From IMG/VR virus record IMGVR_UViG_3300042558_003926, positions 62,001-126,000 of that record: a DNA stretch of 64,000 nt; one strand, 5' to 3'. Below, in pieces: positions 4,670-62,324 of the stretch. The translations under genes and the position numbers were made by a program. The first letter of the stretch is position 1. Each line of letters opens with the position of its first letter. The notes below the pieces were generated by a model that saw only the letters and a list, made by a program, of their open reading frames with translations, did no database searches and had not been told where the DNA came from.

Positions 4670-6094
4670 ATGCCGGCTGACTGGAAAGGTTTTATAGATA
4701 GTTTCTCTGATTATTTAACATCTAAGGTAGAAAAAACACCGCAGAAAAATGCTGACAAGCTAATAGAGCTTTATTTAGATGCACTATCAAATAGAGCTAG
4801 ACCTTTGCCTGGAACTGCTCTATTTAACAAGAATGATCCTAAAGTAATTTCAGCCAAAGGAGCTTTAAAGGAGTCTTTTGGTAAAGCAATGGAGATGATG
4901 CTGAAAGACCCGGATCAGCAAAAATTATCATTCACTAATAAGAAGAAAGATAAATCTTTTTTTGATCCTGCCACTTTTGAAGCAGAACAATCTATACCTA
5001 CTGAGCCACCTTCTAGCTCAGACCCACTCCCTCAGATAGATCCTAAGTATTATGATGAGATTATAGCTAACTCTAGTCAGACTTTCTTTATTAAACAAAA
5101 GGATGGACCGAAGTCAAATAGGATCTTTGATTACAAAACCAGGGTCGATCTAACATTACCCGAGGGATATGGAATTCCTTTGTCCATATTCGGGAGTACT
5201 ATAGATGAGATTATATCAACTCTGAAAGCATACACATATCTACCCGGATTGCTTAAATTAATATCATACAGGAATTCCGGATATGATCTTGTACCCGATA
5301 TAAACAAAAAAGGAGTTGCTACTACATATGGCGAGCTAATTAGAGATTTTGTTAAATTGTATGCTAGAGGAGGTGACTATAGACAAATAGGTGACGCGTA
5401 CAGATCCGTAACAGGATCGAGTGATGAAAACCTTAGTGCTACCATAAATTCAGAGCTAGGCATCCTTATAAAGCTCTATGCTGACTATGAGCTAAAGACT
5501 TGGTTAGAGATAGCAAGACCTTACATAGAAAAAACAGCTAAGGATAAAGCAATAGCAGAAATAAAGAAATCCCAAAATATACCGGAATCTCAAAAGATAG
5601 AGGGTGAAGATGACGTAGTAAATCCGAATATAACCGATCAGTTAGCTACTATGATGATAGATTCAGAGAAGGATCCATATAGTATAATGGCAAGATCCCT
5701 AGTTTTATTTTGGACAATAGTAGGAACAGGAACAACGACTCTTTTTTCCGGAGCAACTGGAGTTCCGCCTTCTACTATAGCTATTCCTAATACATATCAA
5801 ATAGTTTTTCCTGGACTTCCTTTTATAGTTGCTAAGGGGTTTAAAAAGGCTTTTAATGTCGGGGTAAATCCTAAATTTATTCCGGAAATAACATTTTTAC
5901 AATATCAAATAAATCCCTCTGCTGCAATTAAAAAAATAGACGATGCGGGTAAGCTTTCAGCAAAAGCAACGTCCGCTGCTATAGCTGCTGTTTTTGCGAC
6001 TCATCTTCTTACTGTAAAATTTATTTACTTCGGACAGATACCTGCTGCACCTTCTCCTATCCCAGCTCCTTCCTTTGTTTTTGCAGTCTTTTAG
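4670..6094 (+). CDS. Hypothetical protein (probable baseplate/spike-associated)
   Basis: 474-aa ORF starting 2 nt after the spike gene; no recognised motif. Confidence 0.6.
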   Translation: MPADWKGFIDSFSDYLTSKVEKTPQKNADKLIELYLDALSNRARPLPGTALFNKNDPKVISAKGALKESFGKAMEMMLKDPDQQKLSFTNKKKDKSFFDPATFEAEQSIPTEPPSSSDPLPQIDPKYYDEIIANSSQTFFIKQKDGPKSNRIFDYKTRVDLTLPEGYGIPLSIFGSTIDEIISTLKAYTYLPGLLKLISYRNSGYDLVPDINKKGVATTYGELIRDFVKLYARGGDYRQIGDAYRSVTGSSDENLSATINSELGILIKLYADYELKTWLEIARPYIEKTAKDKAIAEIKKSQNIPESQKIEGEDDVVNPNITDQLATMMIDSEKDPYSIMARSLVLFWTIVGTGTTTLFSGATGVPPSTIAIPNTYQIVFPGLPFIVAKGFKKAFNVGVNPKFIPEITFLQYQINPSAAIKKIDDAGKLSAKATSAAIAAVFATHLLTVKFIYFGQIPAAPSPIPAPSFVFAVF

Positions 6095-11671: not shown

Positions 11672-12202
11672 ATGCAAAGTTATTCACCTTTTTTCGGAGA
11701 AAAAGATAAGAGTGTAAATTATACAGTAAATGGGGTTAAACCAGTAACTACTAATACTACTTTTTATAACTCTAAAGATATTTACGATACACCAGAGCTA
11801 GCTTCCAGTAGATCTAATAGTATTGGATGCTCTGGCTATAGAACTGCGATAGTTAACGCTAACGGCCAATATAAATATTCACCTTGCTCAACAATGGAGG
11901 AATATAAAAAAATAATGAAAGAATTACCTAAAGTTACTGTAGAAAGAAGGTATTATGATTTTGATCCCGGTCAAAACATATATGATATTAGAGATACGCT
12001 GAATGATAATCTATACAATGGATTTGATTATCAGAATCAACTTATGAAAAAGAGTTTATCTAATGTTATTTACAGGGATCCAGTTAAAGCGGGAATTCTA
12101 GTTTATTTTGAAAGAGTAGTTTACGCACTCATAGAAACAACCAAACAAATTAGAAATTTTGCTAATTACACGGTAAATAAAAACAATAAAAGAGTTTTCT
12201 AA
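11672..12202 (+). CDS. Hypothetical baseplate-region protein
   Basis: 176 aa, tightly packed between gp6 and the next gene; contains an IGCSG...YSPC motif. Confidence 0.6.
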   Translation: MQSYSPFFGEKDKSVNYTVNGVKPVTTNTTFYNSKDIYDTPELASSRSNSIGCSGYRTAIVNANGQYKYSPCSTMEEYKKIMKELPKVTVERRYYDFDPGQNIYDIRDTLNDNLYNGFDYQNQLMKKSLSNVIYRDPVKAGILVYFERVVYALIETTKQIRNFANYTVNKNNKRVF

Positions 12203-49935: not shown

Positions 49936-49943
49936 GATATATA
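49936..49943 (+). promoter_or_regulatory. Late promoter motif GATATATA
   Basis: Intergenic, heads the 49962-54015 cluster. Confidence 0.65.
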
Positions 49944-49961
49944 CATAAAAAGTTTTGTCTG

Positions 49962-50507
49962 ATGAAAATTAAGAAATTTGATTCCTTTGTATCCGAAAGT
50001 TTAAATGAAGACTCGTCACATTACGAGGGCAAAAACAAATTTAGCAAATGGCTAAGGGGAGTAAATGATAGGATTAAGTCCGAAGTGGACGATTCCAAAT
50101 TTTATTCTAGATATACAGACCCAAATACTGATAAATTTGTAGCTGCAAACAAGGCCACGGCTTTAATACCCGGAGCTTTTAGATTAATCATAGGAGCAGG
50201 TGCTGCTATATCAGACTTCTTTACAAAAGGGGATAATAAGGACACAGTATCAAAATACTCCAAAGAAGATCTTAGTAATAAAAAGGAAGAGATCATAAAT
50301 AAATGGGAGCAGGACAATATTAAATCAGATACAACAGAAGCTGACGCAGAAAAATTTTATAAATCTGGTGTTATCAAGGGTAAAAAATTCTTTGGACCCG
50401 ATTATGACCCGGTAAAACCCAAAAACAAGGACGAAGAAATCTACACTGATTATATAGATGGTGTGATGGAAAGATATTACAAAAGAACATCCAAATATGC
50501 CAAATAA
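49962..50507 (+). CDS. Putative internal head protein (MKIKKFDSFVSESLNE)
   Basis: CTS-like N-terminus; one mildly hydrophobic segment. Confidence 0.55.
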   Translation: MKIKKFDSFVSESLNEDSSHYEGKNKFSKWLRGVNDRIKSEVDDSKFYSRYTDPNTDKFVAANKATALIPGAFRLIIGAGAAISDFFTKGDNKDTVSKYSKEDLSNKKEEIINKWEQDNIKSDTTEADAEKFYKSGVIKGKKFFGPDYDPVKPKNKDEEIYTDYIDGVMERYYKRTSKYAK

Positions 50508-51426
50508 ACTGATGGATTTCTCAGGATTCTCCAGAGTGTTTGAAGGCGGAGCAGCTATAAAATCATCTAGGAGTATTAGAGAGGACGAGTTTCCTAAAAC
50601 ACTGGATAGCATAAAATCTATTTTATTTCCCATCCTAGGTATAAATCCAACCAAGGAGGGATCTCAATATCTTGTAATCGGTAGTATTGGGAAAAAGAAA
50701 AATCCGGAGGATACATCAGGAGATCTTGATATAGGATATGACAGCAGCTGGTTTTCTAGAGAACATGGGATCACTGCTAAGGAGTGTTCATCTGAGGTTT
50801 ATAAATTGGTCTCTCAGGATCTTCCTGAAAAATTAGGATTCGACCCGGAAATAAATCATATGAAGGGATTAAGCATAGTTAGTTTAGGCTGGCCAATCCA
50901 GGGTGATTTTAGTAAAGGGATAGTTCAGTTAGATTTAATCCCTGTATCCAGCATGGATTGGGCTAAATTTATTTATTATTCACCTAATTATAAAATAGCG
51001 GAGAGCAAATATAAATCGGCTCATAGAAATTGGTTATTGACAGCAATACTAGCATCAAGAAGAAGAATAATTAAGGTAGACCCGGATGGACAGGTATTGG
51101 ATTATGATTCTCCTGTTCTAATGCTCAGCGATGGTTTATTCTGGCACACAAAGTCATATGCAGGAAAAATTAAGTCCAGGTTAAAGAACCCTAAAAAAAT
51201 AGAGGGAAGCGAGAGATTTGTTACCAGGAATCCACAAGAATTTATAGATTTTACACTGGGGCCAGGGTATACTCCGGAGGAGGTAAAAACATTCGAGCAA
51301 GTATTTTCTATAATTAGCGATCCTTCTTTTGAATTATATGGTAATCTGGAGGAGATTAAGGATAAATTTAAGGAATATCTAGAAAGAACCGGTTTAGAGG
51401 TTCCGTCCGAAATAAATAGAATTTAA
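50497..51426 (+). CDS. Pol-beta-superfamily nucleotidyltransferase
   Basis: IGSIGKK...SGDLDIG (GS..DxD) plus a third Asp in VQLDL; leader MDFSGFSRVFE|GG. Confidence 0.75.
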   Translation: MPNKLMDFSGFSRVFEGGAAIKSSRSIREDEFPKTLDSIKSILFPILGINPTKEGSQYLVIGSIGKKKNPEDTSGDLDIGYDSSWFSREHGITAKECSSEVYKLVSQDLPEKLGFDPEINHMKGLSIVSLGWPIQGDFSKGIVQLDLIPVSSMDWAKFIYYSPNYKIAESKYKSAHRNWLLTAILASRRRIIKVDPDGQVLDYDSPVLMLSDGLFWHTKSYAGKIKSRLKNPKKIEGSERFVTRNPQEFIDFTLGPGYTPEEVKTFEQVFSIISDPSFELYGNLEEIKDKFKEYLERTGLEVPSEINRI

Positions 51427-51459
51427 TAGATATAATATACATTACTAAAAGAAGAAGAT

Positions 51460-53466
51460 ATGTCAGGAATAAGTCATCTATACGACATCTATAATAAGAA
51501 GGGGAAGGATTTTGTAGAAAAGCTTTTCAATTCTTATGTGACCGTTAATGAAAAAATGGACGGGTCAGCATTTGTGTTCGAGAGAGACGTAGAGACTGGC
51601 AAATTTATTTTTTATAAAAGAGATCAAAGAAATCCTATTACTATGGTGGATAGGACTTTAATGAAGTACTACGAAAAACCTATATTGTATATAGAAGCTC
51701 TACCTGCACATATTATTAAGGAAATTCCTAGAGGATGGAGATTTGGCTTGGAATACTTTTCAAATTCCAGTCCGGTAGAGATTGCTTACGATAGAGTTCC
51801 GAAGAATAATCTGATACTCTCCTATGTTAAGCCTAAAGGTGATTCGGACGCTGAGCAGATTACCGATAAAGAAAATCTTGATATGTGGGCTGATTTGATA
51901 GGAGTCGAAAGACCCCCTATAATTTTTCAGGGTATTCTATCTAAGGAGCAGAAAGATAAGATTCTAGATTTCCTTAGAACTCCATTTGATGAGCTTGTTA
52001 ATGAATATAAAACCAAGAGTTTTGTTAGGTTCATACTTAGTGTTCTTAATCCAGAGATAGAGAGCAGCGCACTAAACGACGATCTAGATAAGCCGATAGA
52101 GGGAATAGTATTTAGATTTAGCTCCGATGCAGATAAGGATAATGGAGGCGAGATTCTACTTTCTAAAATGGTGGATCCGGTATTTACAGAGATGGCCAAA
52201 TCTAAATCTAGTAAAAAATCAGAACAAAAACCTAGTGATTTTCTAGGAATCACAATCCTAGATGTGATGAATTTCATTCTGGACAAGGGAATAGAAAGCT
52301 TTAGAGTTAATGGAGATTCAGAGGATGAAAGATACATCTCCTTCATATCAGATGTTTTTTCTAAATTCTTAGAAGAATATGGATACAAATATAAAGGATC
52401 AGACTTTCAAGAGCCAGACTATCTAAAGAAAGATGAATTTAGGTTAAACCGTGATATGATCCGGGATCCTAGAGTTATGAAATGGATCGAAGAGGATGAT
52501 TCTTACGAATCGCTATTTAAGCTCATTTTGAATTCATTCAGGAAGATTAAGAAAAGGGCCGGCGGAATTATAACTCCCGGTATAATCGACCAATTTAATA
52601 TGCTGGTTTCTGATATAGATGGTGTTGTCAGAAAAAAGAAATTAGTTAAGGCTAATGAATCTGATATACCTTCATTCTTAGACTTTAAAAAGAATAATCT
52701 ATCGGCTGGAAATCTCGATCACCTAACTCTAGAAGGTGATGAAGCTGATGAAAATTTCGATGACCACTTTTATTCTTACAATGACTTCATCACTGCTTTA
52801 GAAACTATTGATTCTGTAGATAAGCCTAAAGTTGAAACCAAGCCGATAGACGATGAATCATTTAAGAGTGATCAGAAAGTTAAAAAGGGAGATTTACAGA
52901 AAGTAAATCTTATAGTTGGTAGATTCCAGCCTTTCCACAACGGACACATGAAAATGGTGGATGTTCTGATGGATAAGAACGGACTTCCATCGATAGTGGC
53001 AGTGGTTCATCCCGGGCATAACAAATCTGGTAATTCTCCATTCGATTCAACATTGGTTTCCAAGTATATGGAAAGCTTAATAAATGAAGCACCTCAAAAA
53101 ATACAGGGATATTTTATTGTCAATAGAGGACTTTTGGGTCCAATATGCAGTCGTGCTAAAGAACTTGGATATCTTCCAGTTTCCATTGGAAGCGGAGAGG
53201 ATAGATCGGAGGATTACAATAAACAATTTGACTTCCTAAAGAAATTAGGATCAGACTTCCCTGAATCTATAGAATTAGTAGAAACCCCAAGAAAAAATAG
53301 CGGGAGTGAAATAAGAGGATACTTAGATAACGAGGACTTTTTAGCATTTAAGAAATCAGTTCCTCAGTCAGTATCTTCTTTCTATCAGCAAATGGTTTCT
53401 TCTAAGAAAGGAAGAGGTATTTCAGAGAGCTTGGAAGTGGAAGACCTAGAAAAGAAAAATAAATAA
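51460..53466 (+). CDS. Fusion of an RNA-ligase-like (KxDG) domain and a HIGH-class cytidylyl/adenylyltransferase domain
   Basis: EKMDGS (motif I), FGLEYF (III), EGIVF (IV), SKMVD (V); C-terminal GRFQPFHNGH, GEDR and SGSEIR. Confidence 0.75.
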   Translation: MSGISHLYDIYNKKGKDFVEKLFNSYVTVNEKMDGSAFVFERDVETGKFIFYKRDQRNPITMVDRTLMKYYEKPILYIEALPAHIIKEIPRGWRFGLEYFSNSSPVEIAYDRVPKNNLILSYVKPKGDSDAEQITDKENLDMWADLIGVERPPIIFQGILSKEQKDKILDFLRTPFDELVNEYKTKSFVRFILSVLNPEIESSALNDDLDKPIEGIVFRFSSDADKDNGGEILLSKMVDPVFTEMAKSKSSKKSEQKPSDFLGITILDVMNFILDKGIESFRVNGDSEDERYISFISDVFSKFLEEYGYKYKGSDFQEPDYLKKDEFRLNRDMIRDPRVMKWIEEDDSYESLFKLILNSFRKIKKRAGGIITPGIIDQFNMLVSDIDGVVRKKKLVKANESDIPSFLDFKKNNLSAGNLDHLTLEGDEADENFDDHFYSYNDFITALETIDSVDKPKVETKPIDDESFKSDQKVKKGDLQKVNLIVGRFQPFHNGHMKMVDVLMDKNGLPSIVAVVHPGHNKSGNSPFDSTLVSKYMESLINEAPQKIQGYFIVNRGLLGPICSRAKELGYLPVSIGSGEDRSEDYNKQFDFLKKLGSDFPESIELVETPRKNSGSEIRGYLDNEDFLAFKKSVPQSVSSFYQQMVSSKKGRGISESLEVEDLEKKNK

Positions 53467-53472
53467 ACAGAA

Positions 53473-54015
53473 ATGAATAAATTCGTAACCAAATTTAGCG
53501 ATTTTAGTTTTCATATGAACGAGAGCGACGGATTCGGTACTTCTCCATTCTTAATGAAAAAGGAATCCGATATCTACCATTATTTCTTTAATCTAGATAA
53601 AGAAAGCGGAGAGACAGACGCATACCATTTAATTATCGGTAAGTATTCTGATCGTGAAGTAATCGAAGGGCCTAAAAATTCTTATTGCGTTCTAACGATA
53701 AATGAGATATCACCAGAAATCCTGGAAGACATTGCAGCTGATAAGGAAGATATTCCTAAGATGAATTCACAGAAATTTAAAATGGGATCTGGCGAACTAT
53801 CAAGATTGATGAAGTATGTTTACAAGTGTGTAAATGATTATCTCCAGATTAATCCAAAAGTTATTAGAATATATGATGAGGTTCAGGATAACTTAGTCTA
53901 TGACGGAAAGGGCTCATACCTAGAATATATGAAATCGATATCTCTTTCTGAACTTGGTACCAATTGGGCAGTACAAGAGGGATCGTCAAAAATGACCTTA
54001 ATTATCAGCAGATAA
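53473..54015 (+). CDS. Putative internal head protein (MNKFVTKFSDFSFHMNE)
   Basis: CTS-like N-terminus; no other motif recognised. Confidence 0.55.
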   Translation: MNKFVTKFSDFSFHMNESDGFGTSPFLMKKESDIYHYFFNLDKESGETDAYHLIIGKYSDREVIEGPKNSYCVLTINEISPEILEDIAADKEDIPKMNSQKFKMGSGELSRLMKYVYKCVNDYLQINPKVIRIYDEVQDNLVYDGKGSYLEYMKSISLSELGTNWAVQEGSSKMTLIISR

Positions 54016-54044
54016 GAAACTTTTTATAAATACATAGGTATAAT
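54016..54044 (+). promoter_or_regulatory. Putative middle promoter GAAAC-N18-TATAAT
   Basis: Intergenic, 22 nt before the Hc1-like ATG; also contains TATAAATA. Confidence 0.65.
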
Positions 54045-54066
54045 TACAAATTAAAAATAAAACAAA

Positions 54067-54243
54067 ATGGAAAAATTCGAACAGATTAAAGCTCTAATCG
54101 AGCAAACACAAGGAGACGTTGAGAAATTCTCAGCTAAAGGAAATTCAACTGCAGGAACTAGAGTAAGAAAAGCTATGCAGGAGTTAAAAAACTTAGCTCA
54201 AGAATTAAGAGTTGAAATCCAGGAGGCAAAAAATAAAGCTTAA
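54067..54243 (+). CDS. Histone H1-like (Hc1-family) nucleoid protein, Bacteroidota type
   Basis: Translated by hand (58 aa): MEKFEQIKALIEQTQGDVEKFSAKGNSTAGTRVRKAMQELKNLAQELRVEIQEAKNKA; KGN.AGTR.RK signature; missing from the ORF track. Confidence 0.85.
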   Translation: MEKFEQIKALIEQTQGDVEKFSAKGNSTAGTRVRKAMQELKNLAQELRVEIQEAKNKA

Positions 54244-54261
54244 TCACTAAAAAATTATCAA

Positions 54262-54498
54262 ATGAGCTATTGGGTAGTTAAAACCAAATTCGAATCTGGA
54301 GAGGTAAAAAAGAATGGGGATCCAGTTTATAAAAAAGCAGAATTTCTAGTTGCGGGTGACTCTGTCATCGAAGTAGAAAAGAAAGTTGCAGAGTATATGG
54401 ACGGCACCATCGGAGGCTACGAATCTTTCCAGGTTACAAAAACCAAAATCGAAGCCGTTATATACGACAAAAACAAATATGAAGAACAACTCCTCTAA
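54262..54498 (+). CDS. DUF4494-like protein
   Basis: W..K.KFE.....G..K...FLV.GDS..E.E pattern and TKIEAV resemble Bacteroidota DUF4494. Confidence 0.6.
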   Translation: MSYWVVKTKFESGEVKKNGDPVYKKAEFLVAGDSVIEVEKKVAEYMDGTIGGYESFQVTKTKIEAVIYDKNKYEEQLL

Positions 54499-54730
54499 AT
54501 CCGCTGAAACCAGTTTCTATGCTCCACCACAATCTCCAATTGCAATACAGCCCGGTGATACCGGATTCAAAACTGTAGGTAAGGGATATAATAGATTTAT
54601 CTGGACATTTGCGGACTGGCAGAAGGGGAAGAAGAAGATTATAGATCCTGATACCAATTGGGATCTGGCTTCAAAACCAATCACCCAGAAAGAATGGGAC
54701 AAAAAACAAAAAGACCTATATTTAAAATAG
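54479..54730 (+). CDS. Small hypothetical protein (83 aa)
   Basis: ATG at 54479 is in frame with track ORF 54386-54730; overlaps the previous gene by 20 nt. Confidence 0.55.
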   Translation: MKNNSSKSAETSFYAPPQSPIAIQPGDTGFKTVGKGYNRFIWTFADWQKGKKKIIDPDTNWDLASKPITQKEWDKKQKDLYLK

Positions 54731-54741
54731 GTCTTTTTTTT
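54708..54741 (+). terminator. Intrinsic terminator
   Basis: AAAAAGACCTAT / ATAGGTCTTTTT stem with T-run; late motif GATATATA follows at 54742-54749. Confidence 0.7.
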
Positions 54742-54764
54742 GATATATAGAATAAAGAAATTCT

Positions 54765-55535
54765 GTGGTTAAAATATTATCATTTAGCGAATATTTATTT
54801 GAAAGCTCGTCTCAGACGAGCAATGATTTAATTAATAGTTTTAAAAATGCCATAAAAACTACTCAGGCAGAAGAATCACCACGAGGGAGTAATAAAGGTC
54901 CTAAAGTCGAACCTTTACTGAAAGGAGTTGGTGCTGCCCCAGGTGCACCCTGGTGTGTAGCTTTTGTTCATGGTGTTCTAAATAAAACCAAATTTAGCCA
55001 GGATATTAAAAGCCAGATACCTAAAGATGCGGCGGTTAAATACCACTGGGAAAGAACCAAGGCTAAAAAAATCACATATAAACCAGGGATGGATCCTAAA
55101 AACATTCTGCCTGGTATGGTTTTTTGTTATCTAAGTAAGGATAAAAAAACTGGTACATATCCGGGACACGGTCACACTGGAATAGTTTTAAGTGTGGATA
55201 AGGAGAAAAGAGAATGGACTGGAATAGAAGGTAATACTAATCCACTTGATGGCGGTAGAGAGGGATATGGAACTTTTATAGTTACCAGAAAAATTGATGA
55301 TCCCAGTATATCCAAGGACAAAAAGGATCACCCATCTAAACCACTCGGATTTATTGATTATTTTTCCTCTCATAGAAAAAATCCGGAGTTTACTAAAACA
55401 TTCTCAGAAAACCTAAAGAGATTAAGAGACGATCTTCGACCAAAAACAAATAAAGAGATAGCTTATCTTAAGGCTAATCCAGGAGTATTAAAGGATTACG
55501 AGAATAACTATAATAACAGAAATAAAAGCAAATAA
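54765..55535 (+). CDS. CHAP-domain peptidoglycan hydrolase with CTS-like leader
   Basis: E..RGSNKGP.V, APWCVAFV (Cys), GHGHTGIV (His), IEGNT; GTG start; leader KILSFSEYLFE. Confidence 0.85.
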   Translation: MVKILSFSEYLFESSSQTSNDLINSFKNAIKTTQAEESPRGSNKGPKVEPLLKGVGAAPGAPWCVAFVHGVLNKTKFSQDIKSQIPKDAAVKYHWERTKAKKITYKPGMDPKNILPGMVFCYLSKDKKTGTYPGHGHTGIVLSVDKEKREWTGIEGNTNPLDGGREGYGTFIVTRKIDDPSISKDKKDHPSKPLGFIDYFSSHRKNPEFTKTFSENLKRLRDDLRPKTNKEIAYLKANPGVLKDYENNYNNRNKSK

Positions 55536-58208: not shown

Positions 58209-59498
58209 ATGGCAAGACCAGTATTAAATTTCGCAGATTTCTTGATCGAGTCTGCAAGAATGATCAACGAGGGATATAGCTTTTCTGAAGCTATGGAATC
58301 ACTAAACGCATTTACCCAAACTAAGGGAATGAGTCTTTCAAGCGGAAACCAGAAAACTTATGTGAAGGAAGCTCTAGCAAATATTGAATTAATGGCTAAA
58401 CAAAACTCGGTAAGTCCTGAGACTGTAGTTACTGCTTTAGGTGATGCTTTGGGATCAATAATTTCAGATTCTATTGAAACTAAGAATCTAAAACTTTATT
58501 TAGACAATTGTGGAGTAGTTTCCAATAAATTAAAAATTACAGGGGTAACGGCAGGATCTGTAAAATGTGATGCTATACCATCAACTTCAGTGGAAGCTGC
58601 TAAGAAAAATGGAAACAAGGTACTTTTAACTGATCTTCTAACATCAATTAATTTAGCTAATGCAGAGGCAAGAAAATCTAAGACTTATGCTAAACAGAAA
58701 AAAGCTGGTAAACCTTTCGAACTTAACGTAGATAAGGAAGGTAATCTGATTGATGGAAGTTATGACAAACAGATATTTATAACTAATACATCTGGGTCTA
58801 CAAAATTCGAATGGAAGCTAAATACATTCTCTAATCCAGTAACACCGGCACAGGATGATTTTTCTTACGGGTCTGATTCTGTTGAACTGAACACCGCCGA
58901 TAATGGAATAGCTAATGATGTTGGATATGTAAATCTTGTACTCTATTCAGTAGAGAGTATTGCTGATGGTAAAACATCCTATAATGTTACTGACGTTGTG
59001 CCTGTAACAATTCCAACTAAAGCACCAGATAGCGAGAAGAAAATTGAGATCACAGACTATAACGGTGCATATTTTTCTCAGGGTAAATATGAATTAACCG
59101 AAACTGGTAAAAAAGCAATCTATGCTGCTATCCAGCAAAACTTTACCTCAATCAAAGAAGTAACGATAAATGGTTATGCTTCTAAAGAGGGAACAGTAGA
59201 GGTTAACACGCAACTATGTAAAGATAGAGCAGCCGAAGCAGCAAAATTCATTAAAACTTTATCTAAGGATGCAACAGTTACTGCTTCGGAAACTGCAAAT
59301 ATCCAGCCAGCTGATAACACGGACAAAAAGGAAGCTTGGAGAAAAATATCATTAGATATAAAAGGTACATCCGTAATTCCGGGTGATGTTAAAGATGTCA
59401 TAAAATTCATAAGTCAGGACGATACGATTTATTCAGAAGATTATACTCTTCGTCAGACGATATTCCAGTTTGCTATTGAGATAGACACTGAAGGTTAA
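58209..59498 (+). CDS. OmpA C-terminal (peptidoglycan-binding) domain protein with CTS-like leader
   Basis: FSQGKYELT..GK, INGYASKEG..VNTQLCKDRA, WRKI; leader VLNFADFLIE...INE; no signal peptide. Confidence 0.7.
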   Translation: MARPVLNFADFLIESARMINEGYSFSEAMESLNAFTQTKGMSLSSGNQKTYVKEALANIELMAKQNSVSPETVVTALGDALGSIISDSIETKNLKLYLDNCGVVSNKLKITGVTAGSVKCDAIPSTSVEAAKKNGNKVLLTDLLTSINLANAEARKSKTYAKQKKAGKPFELNVDKEGNLIDGSYDKQIFITNTSGSTKFEWKLNTFSNPVTPAQDDFSYGSDSVELNTADNGIANDVGYVNLVLYSVESIADGKTSYNVTDVVPVTIPTKAPDSEKKIEITDYNGAYFSQGKYELTETGKKAIYAAIQQNFTSIKEVTINGYASKEGTVEVNTQLCKDRAAEAAKFIKTLSKDATVTASETANIQPADNTDKKEAWRKISLDIKGTSVIPGDVKDVIKFISQDDTIYSEDYTLRQTIFQFAIEIDTEG

Positions 59499-60917: not shown

Positions 60918-62324
60918 ATGATCATAGACATAGAAAATAAGGGAAGTTATCTAAAAGTATCCCACTTTAACGAAGAGGGAGAATTGGCTTTTTTAGAAGT
61001 TCCCATTAAGGAGGAGGACAGATTTATTTGGGAGAAGTGCAGTCCTAATGATCCAAAAAGGGACAAAGAATGGACGAATTGGACAGGAGAGGCGGTAAAG
61101 AAAACGAAGACCGAGAAATACAATAAGTATAGAATGGCTCAGATACTTATAGATTCTCCCGAAGAATTGACCAAACCCCTTTGGGAGTACCAGACCCCTA
61201 GAAAATACTTTGTCGATATCGAGGTTGAGATAACGGAGGATATGGCAGCAGCTTTAGATACAGAGAATGCAAGAAATCGGGTTCTTTCTATAGGGATTGC
61301 TACAGACAAGAATAAGATAATAGTTCTTGGTCTTGATCCGCTAACACCAGAACAGCAAGCTAGTATCTACAAGAAGATAAATTCATACTTTGAAAGAACC
61401 GGTGACGAATGGTCGTTTAAATACAAACAGTTTCCATCAGAGTATGATATGCTCTACACATTTTTTAGAGAGCTTGGTCCTCGTATGCCAGTAATAACCG
61501 GTTGGAACTGGTTAGGGTATGACTGGCCTTATTTATTAAATAGAGCTAAAAGAATAGGAGTTGACCCTAAGATGATTTCCCCTGGAAATTATCTGATAGG
61601 GAAAGCACAGTTACCTATGCACTTACTCATGGTCGATTACCTTGAGATCTATAAAAAATGGGACAGAGTTATTAAGATTAAGGAAAGTAATAGATTAGAT
61701 TATGTTGCCGATAAGGCTGTTGGATTCAAAAAGATAGAATACAATGGAACTCTTAGAGATCTATACCAATCGAATTTTGAGGACTTTATTTATTATAACG
61801 CAGTTGACTGTGCGTTGGTTCATTATATTGACACCAAGCTTAAAACCATGCAAACTTTCTTTAAGATCGCAATGATCTCGGGAGTGGAAATAAACCGTGC
61901 TCTTTCCCCTGTATGGTCTACCGAAATTATGATGCTTAGAAAATTCTTGGATCGGAAGCAAGTTTTTACCGACGAAAGGAAGGAAGAAGTACACGTTAAA
62001 TTTGCGGGAGGTTACGTAAAGGAACCAACCAAAGGATTACATGAATGGATAGCTTGTTATGACTTTGCTTCTCTTTATCCAAACACCATGGTTCAATGGG
62101 GAATCTCTCCAGAAGTTTACAAGGGAAAGAATCCAGCAAATCCAAAAGAAACCTGGTCTAAAACAGCATCTGGAGCATATTTTGGCGGTGAAGACGAGAA
62201 CCCGATATTAAGAACAATCATTAAAGATCTTTATTCCAGAAGGAGGAAAACTAAAGACCGAATGCTAGAGCTACAGATCGAAATTGACAAGCTAGAAAAG
62301 TTATTAGAAAAAGAAAAAAATTAA
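60918..62324 (+). CDS. Family B DNA polymerase, N-terminal subunit (exonuclease plus motif A) of a split enzyme
   Basis: DIEV (ExoI), GWNWLGYDWPYL (ExoII), YNAVD (ExoIII), GGYVKEP, DFASLYP; ends in the fingers; lacks KxxxNSxYG and YGDTDS. Confidence 0.88.
   Translation: MIIDIENKGSYLKVSHFNEEGELAFLEVPIKEEDRFIWEKCSPNDPKRDKEWTNWTGEAVKKTKTEKYNKYRMAQILIDSPEELTKPLWEYQTPRKYFVDIEVEITEDMAAALDTENARNRVLSIGIATDKNKIIVLGLDPLTPEQQASIYKKINSYFERTGDEWSFKYKQFPSEYDMLYTFFRELGPRMPVITGWNWLGYDWPYLLNRAKRIGVDPKMISPGNYLIGKAQLPMHLLMVDYLEIYKKWDRVIKIKESNRLDYVADKAVGFKKIEYNGTLRDLYQSNFEDFIYYNAVDCALVHYIDTKLKTMQTFFKIAMISGVEINRALSPVWSTEIMMLRKFLDRKQVFTDERKEEVHVKFAGGYVKEPTKGLHEWIACYDFASLYPNTMVQWGISPEVYKGKNPANPKETWSKTASGAYFGGEDENPILRTIIKDLYSRRRKTKDRMLELQIEIDKLEKLLEKEKN

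Follow-up and report, generated by a model that had tools for sequence, protein, structure and literature searches.

A predicted nucleic-acid end-repair operon in a huge T4-related phage, with an N-terminal leader resembling the T4 capsid targeting sequence

The analysed window is a 64,000-nucleotide stretch of DNA from the IMG/VR virus record IMGVR_UViG_3300042558_003926. It gave no megablast match to known phages. The phage is T4-related, with gp32, a UvsW-like helicase, a family B polymerase of T4 type and a baseplate wedge protein. Two plus-strand genes are considered here, referred to as A (309 aa) and B (668 aa, one uninterrupted ORF, so the fusion it encodes is real). The operon and its features are as follows; in the motifs below, a slash marks the proposed processing point.

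49936..49943 (+), promoter-like motif GATATATA heading the operon
49962..50507 (+), ORF181, unknown function, with a T4-CTS-like N-terminus (MKIKKFDSFVSE followed by S)
50497..50544 (+), predicted leader of A (residues 1-16, ending VFE before GG)
50497..51426 (+), A, predicted Pol-beta-superfamily nucleotidyltransferase of an uncurated viral family
51460..53466 (+), B, comprising the next four features
51460..52194 (+), B residues 1-245, predicted ligase-type covalent nucleotidyltransferase domain (K32, E214, K236)
52195..52638 (+), B residues 246-393, predicted all-helical domain
52639..52890 (+), B residues 394-477, predicted disordered acidic linker with conserved short motifs
52891..53412 (+), B residues 478-651, predicted HIGH-superfamily nucleotidyltransferase, NMNAT/NadM-like
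53473..54015 (+), ORF180, unknown function, with a looser CTS-like N-terminus (MNKFVTKFSDFSFHMNE followed by S)
54067..54243 (+), 58-aa Hc1/HctA-like histone-like protein, a conserved neighbour
54262..54498 (+), 78-aa protein
54708..54738 (+), terminator-like hairpin closing the transcription unit

The window contains 11 copies of GATATATA, all on the plus strand and all within the 6.5% of the window that is intergenic, as a rule 23-100 nt before a start codon. The copy at 49936-49943 lies 26 nt before ORF181, which overlaps the start of A by 11 nt; the motif therefore heads the operon and not A itself. The same motif lies before the orthologous operon in the related locus L006, before the B homologue in locus L001 and before an A homologue in locus L007. 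The preliminary description called this motif late; however, it also heads the RuvC-SSB-primase-helicase operon, and the label is unproven. Sigma-70 promoter scans were at chance level. The closing hairpin has a 12-bp stem followed by a T run, directly before the next GATATATA at 54742.

No Pfam, PHROG or NCBIfam hit was obtained for ORF181 or ORF180. The L006 orthologue of ORF181 (38% identity) keeps the leader as MRIKSFNGFINE followed by S, and that of ORF180 is 66% identical and sits in the same position. The histone-like protein gave a weak NCBIfam HctA hit, while its L006 orthologue and a copy beside the split HIGH/A cluster in locus L010 both carry Pfam Hc1. The protein at the position of the 78-aa protein in L006 carries DUF4494, a correspondence that rests on position and similar size and N-terminus only.

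The three nucleotide-transfer folds named in the preliminary description were recovered by structure prediction, and their catalytic motifs are present and conserved. In A, residues G62, S63, D76, D78, Q144 and D146 of the GS, DLD and QLD motifs are at least 90% conserved in 84 homologues. The AF2 model has a pLDDT of 94.2, with the leader disordered (below 50). Foldseek matched it to TdT, Pol mu/beta, CutA, TUT7 and Cid1 with probability 0.8-0.98; the best viral match was gp65 of Agrobacterium phage Atu_ph07 (TM 0.70/0.77). The family is almost purely viral and comprises 495 clusters at 50% identity. None of the 84 members matched the RlaP model PF10127 at E up to 1.

In B, EKMDGS lies at residues 31-36, EGIV at 214-217 and the motif V Lys at 236. 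Pfam RNA_ligase (PF09414) matched at E 6e-4, only 20.4 bits against a cut-off of 27. However, Foldseek placed T4 Rnl2 first (E 2e-7), followed by Trl1, Pab1020 and REL1, with no DNA ligase in the top 50. The match to full-length Rnl2 spans 370-385 columns and so extends into the all-helical domain (pLDDT about 85-95); no OB domain is present. The HIGH domain, with GRFQPFHNGH at 487-496 and SGSEIR at 614-619, matched Pfam CTP_transf_like and PHROG 395/3041. A family profile against PDB gave MJ0541 NMNAT at E 5.8e-9, and Foldseek gave archaeal NMNAT with TM 0.69-0.70. Single-sequence PDB searches gave nothing useful, and neither DUF6267 nor the small ligase-like alignment gave a PDB match.

The resemblance to NMNAT raises the possibility that the main role of the module is NAD+ restoration against NAD-depleting defences, with the ligase and A as accessories. 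The closest sequence and structure relatives of the HIGH domain are archaeal NMNAT and NadM, both motifs are of the NMNAT type, and one relative, P0244, also has a Nudix domain, as NadM does. In contrast, the NMNAT equivalog models scored only 28.7 bits against 127 (NF002243) and 20.7 against 181.2 (TIGR01527), and the stretch aligned to the part of archaeal NMNAT that probably binds nicotinamide is not conserved in B's own clade. Furthermore, no NadV/Nampt partner was seen among the window proteins scanned or the genes listed for the five clade loci, and the domain is persistently fused to a ligase or to A. We consider this reading very unlikely.

Gene order and domain fusions tie A, ligase-like domains and this HIGH domain together as one functional unit. 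The order helicase-ORF-A-B is conserved at 65% identity (L006) and at 43% identity (loci L008/L009), locus L003 keeps a remnant of A before B, and L010 has a split HIGH/A cluster. In the jumbo phages Phosso and Atu_ph07, a ligase-like gene overlaps the A homologue. The proteins flanking the module in L005, L008 and L010 gave no Pfam family. At least 10 of 32 long members of the A family carry the B-type HIGH domain. Among individual relatives, P0286 combines HIGH, A and a ligase-like domain, and P0327 combines A with Pfam RNA_ligase; adjacency or fusion to a ligase-like domain was also seen in P0389. P0302 combines HIGH, a CCA-adding enzyme, a PNK-like kinase, HD and A, and P0318 combines HIGH, a CCA-adding enzyme and A. 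This points to nucleic-acid end repair, most likely of RNA, although no healing enzyme (kinase or phosphatase), tRNA gene or Rfam family was found in the window.

A DNA substrate is a possible alternative: a Pol X-like enzyme would add a few (ribo)nucleotides at nicks, gaps or ends of the incoming or replicating genome, and the Rnl2-like ligase, which prefers a 3' ribonucleotide, would seal them, much as in bacterial LigD-type ribo-patch repair. The position directly after the UvsW-like helicase, near SSB, primase, RuvC and PolB, is conserved in divergent phages. The structural neighbours of A include TdT, Pol mu and Pol beta as well as NCLDV Pol X (TM 0.47-0.49; E 0.028), 8 of 84 members gave weak DNA_pol_B_palm hits (best E 0.009), and the Hc1 protein is a conserved neighbour. 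However, TM-scores to Pol mu/beta are low (0.32-0.39), no DNA ligase is among the top 50 structural matches of B, and relatives are fused to a tRNA CCA-adding enzyme. This alternative appears doubtful.

The preliminary description further proposed, as little more than a guess, that these enzymes are packaged in the capsid and proteolytically matured. Comparative data support this idea for the nucleotidyltransferase. Its leader reads MPNKLMDFSGFSRVFE followed by GG (residues 1-18). Family members either start M/GGNA or carry a leader of roughly 10 aa such as MKTFKQFLAE/GGNA, with MKSFKQFVKE, MITFKQFIQE and similar variants. Of 121 family representatives, 22 start M/GG and 75 have a short leader ending in Glu directly before GG; 20 of those leaders have the pattern aromatic-x-x-aromatic-aliphatic-x-E. 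A further 20 internal domain copies are preceded by E/GG, 19 of them with the h-x-E pattern, so conservation of EGGNA at internal domain starts does not argue against a cleavable leader. Overall, Glu occupies P1 in 95 of 99 non-leaderless cases. T4 IPII and IPIII start MKTYQEFIAE, as read from the T4 genome; in that leader, residues 4 and 7 target and residues 8 and 10 direct gp21 cleavage (PMC9026906), and the family leaders resemble it at these positions. The leader of A in the window is a 16-aa variant, F8..F11..V14-F-E16, with two extra residues compared with the T4 pattern.

The same N-terminal motif opens four other proteins of the window: ORF181, the CHAP protein, ORF429 and ORF176. Only 0.08 such proteins were expected, and 0 of 5000 composition-preserving shuffles reached four, although AT-rich codon bias at gene starts could inflate K/F/N/I/E-rich N-termini. 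Orthologues keep the motif. The only experimental hint comes from Atu_ph07 gp65, a 22-24% identical homologue identified by exact mass match, which was found in virion preparations with 10 unique peptides and 36.8% coverage. However, these particles were only PEG-purified, and the list also holds RecA-like, SSB, terminase and RNR proteins.

In contrast, B has no N-terminal tag. Its linker (20 D+E and 11 K+R, pLDDT below 50) carries KANE at 397-400, SFLDFK at 405-410 and LTLE at 421-424, which the preliminary description likened to prohead-protease or targeting signals. KANE and SFLDFK sit in a conserved h-x-E/S site (about 398-401) and a conserved aromatic pair (F406-x-D-[FY]409), and Y438-N-D-F-I-T-A-L-E446 is also conserved. 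LTLE is not conserved even at 70% identity, and bare [LI]xE sites occur at background frequency (0.92 per 100 aa) and carry no information on their own.

It remains possible that the enzymes act only in the cytoplasm of the infected cell, like the T4 Rnl1/Pnkp/RlaP repair proteins, and that the N-terminal motif is a by-product of AT-rich gene starts or a signal for something else. The missing tag on B, the location of the operon in the replication and nucleotide-metabolism module, the presence of GATATATA before replication operons and the absence of the ligase-like gp66 from the Atu_ph07 virion list, itself containing obvious contaminants, fit this view. The leader polymorphism falling exactly at E/GG, the close match to the four functionally mapped T4 positions and the excess of tagged window proteins speak against it, and we regard it as unlikely.

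Our preferred reading, held at a probability of about 50%, is that the operon 49936-54738 encodes a nucleic-acid end-repair kit, at least part of which is built to be loaded into the prohead and delivered with the genome. A would be a template-independent, 3'-end-adding nucleotidyltransferase, from which a gp21-type prohead protease would remove the leader after Glu16, leaving a mature N-terminus GGAAIK; leaderless relatives would obtain the same N-terminus by simple Met removal. Cleavage, packaging and injection are inferred; no prohead protease gene lies in the window, and a tblastn search with T4 gp21 could not show whether this clade has one. After a host nuclease cuts RNA (most likely tRNA), A may restore lost 3' nucleotides and the Rnl2-like 3'-OH/5'-P ligase domain may seal the break, while the HIGH domain may supply or activate an adenylylated phosphate compound, which could be NAD+ from NMN or an adenylylated end.

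A more speculative and rather improbable possibility is that the HIGH domain is not an NMNAT but directly adenylylates a phosphorylated polynucleotide end, using NMNAT chemistry on a 5'-phospho-nucleotide still part of a chain, and hands the ligase a pre-activated AppN end. This would explain why the two domains are fused in many phage protein clusters, why the same HIGH domain is fused to A, and why the ligase motif I Lys can be lost (16 of 241 family representatives). This Lys is lost in 14 of 176 proteins with HIGH and 2 of 65 without, which is no clear signal, and the sequences are not independent. On this reading, the whole kit (A, ligases, HIGH, and in relatives a CCA-adding enzyme, kinase and HD) would be cut out at h-x-E/GG sites by the prohead protease and injected as a pre-emptive repair system.

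Phage RNA-repair enzymes and T4-type capsid-targeted proteins are each known, but neither repair enzymes carrying the capsid tag nor an Rnl2-HIGH fusion is described in the papers that could be searched. If the tag works as in T4, huge phages would deliver nucleotidyltransferases and ligases together with the genome, and damage inflicted by host nucleases could be mended before any phage gene is expressed. The analysis also identifies a large viral Pol-beta family without a curated model and supplies a simple sequence rule, h-x-E/GG, for predicting processed and packaged proteins in uncultured phages.

Among known systems, the T4 internal proteins IPI/IPII/IPIII and Alt (capsid targeting sequence, gp21 cleavage, injection) share with members of the A family a short N-terminal peptide with aromatic residues three apart, then an aliphatic residue, then x-Glu; here, however, the leader of A is a 16-aa variant and the proposed cargo is a set of nucleic-acid enzymes instead of small anti-restriction proteins or an ADP-ribosyltransferase. 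T4 Rnl2 is the best structural match of B over both domains and shares motif I (KxDG), motif IV (EGxV) and the motif V Lys, but B is fused to a HIGH domain. Archaeal NMNAT/NadM adenylyltransferases share the GRFQPF(H/T)xGH motif, a second SxxxxR motif and the predicted fold, whereas B fails the equivalog cut-offs, has no NAD-salvage partner among the window proteins scanned, and is always fused or adjacent to a ligase or to A. RlaP, e.g., T4 NrdC.11 (PMC12776372, PMC7824862), is likewise a Pol-beta-fold enzyme genomically tied to RNA ligases and adds one or two NMPs to damaged RNA 3' ends before ligation, the role proposed for A; however, by DSSP on the model A has strands at residues 190-243 followed by helices, whereas RlaP is described as an NTase domain plus a helical domain. 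Finally, relatives such as P0302, P0318 and P0244 (1636-1802 aa) string several enzymes together, as do the polyvalent proteins of phages (PMC5512222), with which they share the concept of delivery with the DNA at the earliest phase of infection; the window genes, in contrast, are separate small proteins with no MPTase or MuF hub domains, and the proposed processing sites are h-x-E/GG.

Two ORFs, A and B, were identified on the + strand within a tight operon, organised as follows.

49936: GATATATA motif, + strand
49962-50507: ORF181, which overlaps A by 11 nt
50497-51426, + strand: A, 309 aa
51460-53466, + strand: B, 668 aa
53473-54015: ORF180
54067-54243: 58-aa Hc1/HctA-like histone-like protein
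Following this gene: 78-aa protein whose counterpart by position in the related contig L006 carries DUF4494
54708-54738: terminator-like hairpin

The window splits into two modules. Positions 1-44.5 kb comprise a baseplate and tail module, while positions 44.7-64 kb comprise a replication and nucleotide module with RuvC, gp32-like SSB, primase, UvsW-like helicase, the operon described here, a CHAP protein, Hsp20, family B polymerase, MazG and RNR beta. The family B DNA polymerase ORF (60918-62324) is only 468 aa long and covers the exonuclease domain plus the start of the polymerase domain; in LR756500 the matching ORF (L001 10007-13365) is followed by a DUF7487/restriction-endonuclease-like ORF, which suggests a split polymerase gene with an inserted mobile element. 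No close relative was found among deposited phages. The nearest are the 460-735 kb metagenomic phages LR7565xx and the Prevotella Lak megaphages, at about 30-37% protein identity.

The GATATATA motif occurs 11 times in the window (6134, 9538, 16438, 23239, 37107, 44469, 49936, 54742, 57064, 58166 and 62357), always on the + strand and always in intergenic positions, usually 23-60 nt before a start codon. It also recurs before the orthologous genes in related contigs, so it is a real regulatory element of phage promoter-like type. The preliminary description had labelled this motif as late. However, it precedes not only baseplate and tail genes but also the RuvC-SSB-primase-helicase and MazG-RNR operons, and a late assignment is therefore not established.

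Protein A had no Pfam, PHROG, NCBIfam or PDB sequence hit, although an exhaustive search identified 495 clusters at 50% identity, and the family is almost entirely viral. In an alignment of 84 sequences, G62, S63, G65, D76, D78, Q144 and D146 were conserved at 90% or more. The AlphaFold model was confident (pLDDT 94.2, pTM 0.88), with only residues 1-17 disordered. The solved structures that resemble it are polynucleotide 3'-end enzymes of the Pol-beta superfamily, namely TdT, Pol mu, Pol beta, CutA, TUT7 and Cid1, albeit with low TM-scores of 0.25-0.39. Among predicted viral structures, the best match was an uncharacterised protein of Agrobacterium jumbo phage Atu_ph07 (TM 0.70/0.77). None of the 84 members matched RlaP (PF10127), the known ligase-associated Pol-beta family, whereas a few gave weak Pol-beta palm hits.

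The model of protein B has three ordered parts and a disordered linker at residues 394-477. Residues 1-393 matched full-length T4 Rnl2 best (E 2e-7 to 1e-6, 370-385 columns); the other matches were all RNA ligases (Trl1, Pab1020 and REL1), and no DNA ligase appeared in the top 50. In 241 family representatives, the motif I Lys (residue 32 of B) was present in 225, replaced by Q, N, M or R in 15 with the rest of the motif kept, and could not be read in one; no explanation for this replacement was found. Residues 478-651 matched archaeal NMNAT and NadM, with E 5.8e-9 for the family profile against PDB and a TM of about 0.7. However, NMNAT equivalog models scored far below their cut-offs, and the stretch of B's own clade that aligns to the part of archaeal NMNAT likely to bind nicotinamide is not conserved. 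The fusion is widespread, with 693 hits for B itself and 191 hits for the 31% identical LR756500 homologue, many of the latter lacking the HIGH domain or carrying further C-terminal regions. The preliminary description of three nucleotidyltransferase domains is confirmed, and its fold calls and the idea of a coupled three-enzyme module are supported.

The linkage of the three domains is evident from gene order in related contigs and phages. The order helicase-ORF-A-B is kept at 65% identity in L006 and at 43% identity in L008/L009, while L003 keeps only the N-terminal half of A before B. In L010, a stand-alone HIGH protein and A lie two genes apart, beside an Hc1 gene. The Hc1/HctA-like protein is a conserved neighbour of the module in two divergent arrangements (L006 9615-9794; L010 391-567) and could be a DNA-condensing protein packed with the genome. 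In L001 and L005, A is missing, and a second ligase-like protein (L001 4704-5969; L005 4722-5996) directly precedes B instead; this second family, with EKLDG near residue 60 and EGIV near the C-terminus, has no Pfam model. In the cultured jumbo phages Phosso and Atu_ph07, a ligase-like gene overlaps the A homologue next to the primase/helicase.

The preliminary description also proposed that these enzymes are processed and packaged in the capsid. Bare [LI]xE sites were at background frequency, and the LTLE segment of the B linker, suggested there as a protease or targeting signal, is not conserved. In contrast, the N-terminus of the A family shows a distinct pattern. Of 121 representatives in which the conserved GG(N/K/H/A)A motif could be located, 22 begin with Met directly before GG, and 75 have a short leader ending in Glu directly before GG, with hydrophobic-x-Glu present in 74 of them. 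Twenty of those leaders follow the stricter pattern aromatic-x-x-aromatic-aliphatic-x-E, for example MKTFKQFLAE, MITFKQFIQE and MKSFKQFVKE. In addition, 20 of 21 internal domain copies have Glu directly before GG. Both routes, Met removal or cleavage after Glu, would give the same mature N-terminus. The leader of A itself is a conserved 16-aa variant, F-x-x-F-x-x-V-F-E.

For comparison, T4 IPII and IPIII begin MKTYQEFIAE; these 10 residues are the capsid targeting sequence (CTS), in which residues 4 and 7 direct targeting and residues 8 and 10 direct processing by gp21 (PMC9026906). Inside the window, four further proteins carry the motif within their first 16 residues, against an expectation of 0.08, and 0 of 5000 shuffles reached four. 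Together with ORF180, which fits the pattern more loosely, the window proteins with a T4-CTS-like leader other than A are as follows.

11672-12202: ORF176, F/Y-x-x-F/Y-aliphatic-x-E pattern
49962-50507: ORF181, same pattern
53473-54015: ORF180, looser fit
54765-55535: CHAP-domain protein, same pattern as ORF176
58209-59498: ORF429, same pattern as ORF176

In most of these proteins the leader is followed by Ser, and they are candidate capsid-internal or ejected proteins, including a peptidoglycan hydrolase. The motif is kept by the L006 counterparts at 5523 (the ORF181 orthologue) and 10306, by the second ligase-like protein of L001 and by the neighbours of A in L010. B has no such N-terminus, but its linker holds three conserved features: an h-x-E site before Ser (ANE before S here and IQE, LAE, LKE or IRE before S in relatives), an F-x-D-[FY] pair found throughout the family and, in B's clade, Y-N-D-F-I-T-A-L-E. 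Capsid targeting, which is inferred, is the best available reading for A and for several of its neighbours, while it remains open for B.

An experimental hint comes from phage Atu_ph07. By exact mass match to Supplementary Table S5 of PMC6102473, its A homologue is gp65, which was detected in particles with 10 unique peptides and 36.8% coverage. However, the particles were PEG-purified, the list includes clear non-structural proteins, and the adjacent ligase-like gp66 is not listed. Next to the A homologue lie twelve consecutive genes, gp53-gp64 (MF403008.1 39484-51377), mostly encoding proteins of about 30 kDa. Eleven of them (all but gp64) are linked by pairwise similarity as one paralogous family, and all twelve were detected in the published virion proteome.

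Domain fusions further tie the three enzymes together and bear on their substrate. At least 10 of 32 long A-family proteins carry the B-type HIGH domain. Among the relatives, P0327 is A plus Pfam RNA_ligase, and P0291 and P0294 are A plus DUF6267, by profile search a family separate from the second ligase-like one, which also contains a KxDG motif. P0286 is HIGH plus A plus the second ligase-like family (residues 492-914). P0302 combines HIGH, a CCA-adding enzyme, DUF5661, a PNK-like kinase, HD and A; P0318 combines HIGH, a CCA-adding enzyme and A; and P0244 adds a Nudix domain. In these last three giant multi-enzyme proteins (1636-1802 aa), which carry one or more A-type domains, the A domain is preceded by h-x-E directly before GG, as if they were polyproteins cut by the prohead protease. 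RNA repair is favoured over DNA repair because of the RNA-ligase fold and the CCA-adding/kinase/HD fusions. However, the constant position in the replication module and the Pol X likeness of A keep a DNA role possible. The syntax of these fusions and gene orders is that of RNA end-healing and sealing systems as described for jumbo phages (PMC7824862), and RlaP biochemistry offers a direct precedent for a ligase-associated Pol-beta enzyme that restores lost 3' nucleotides (PMC12776372).
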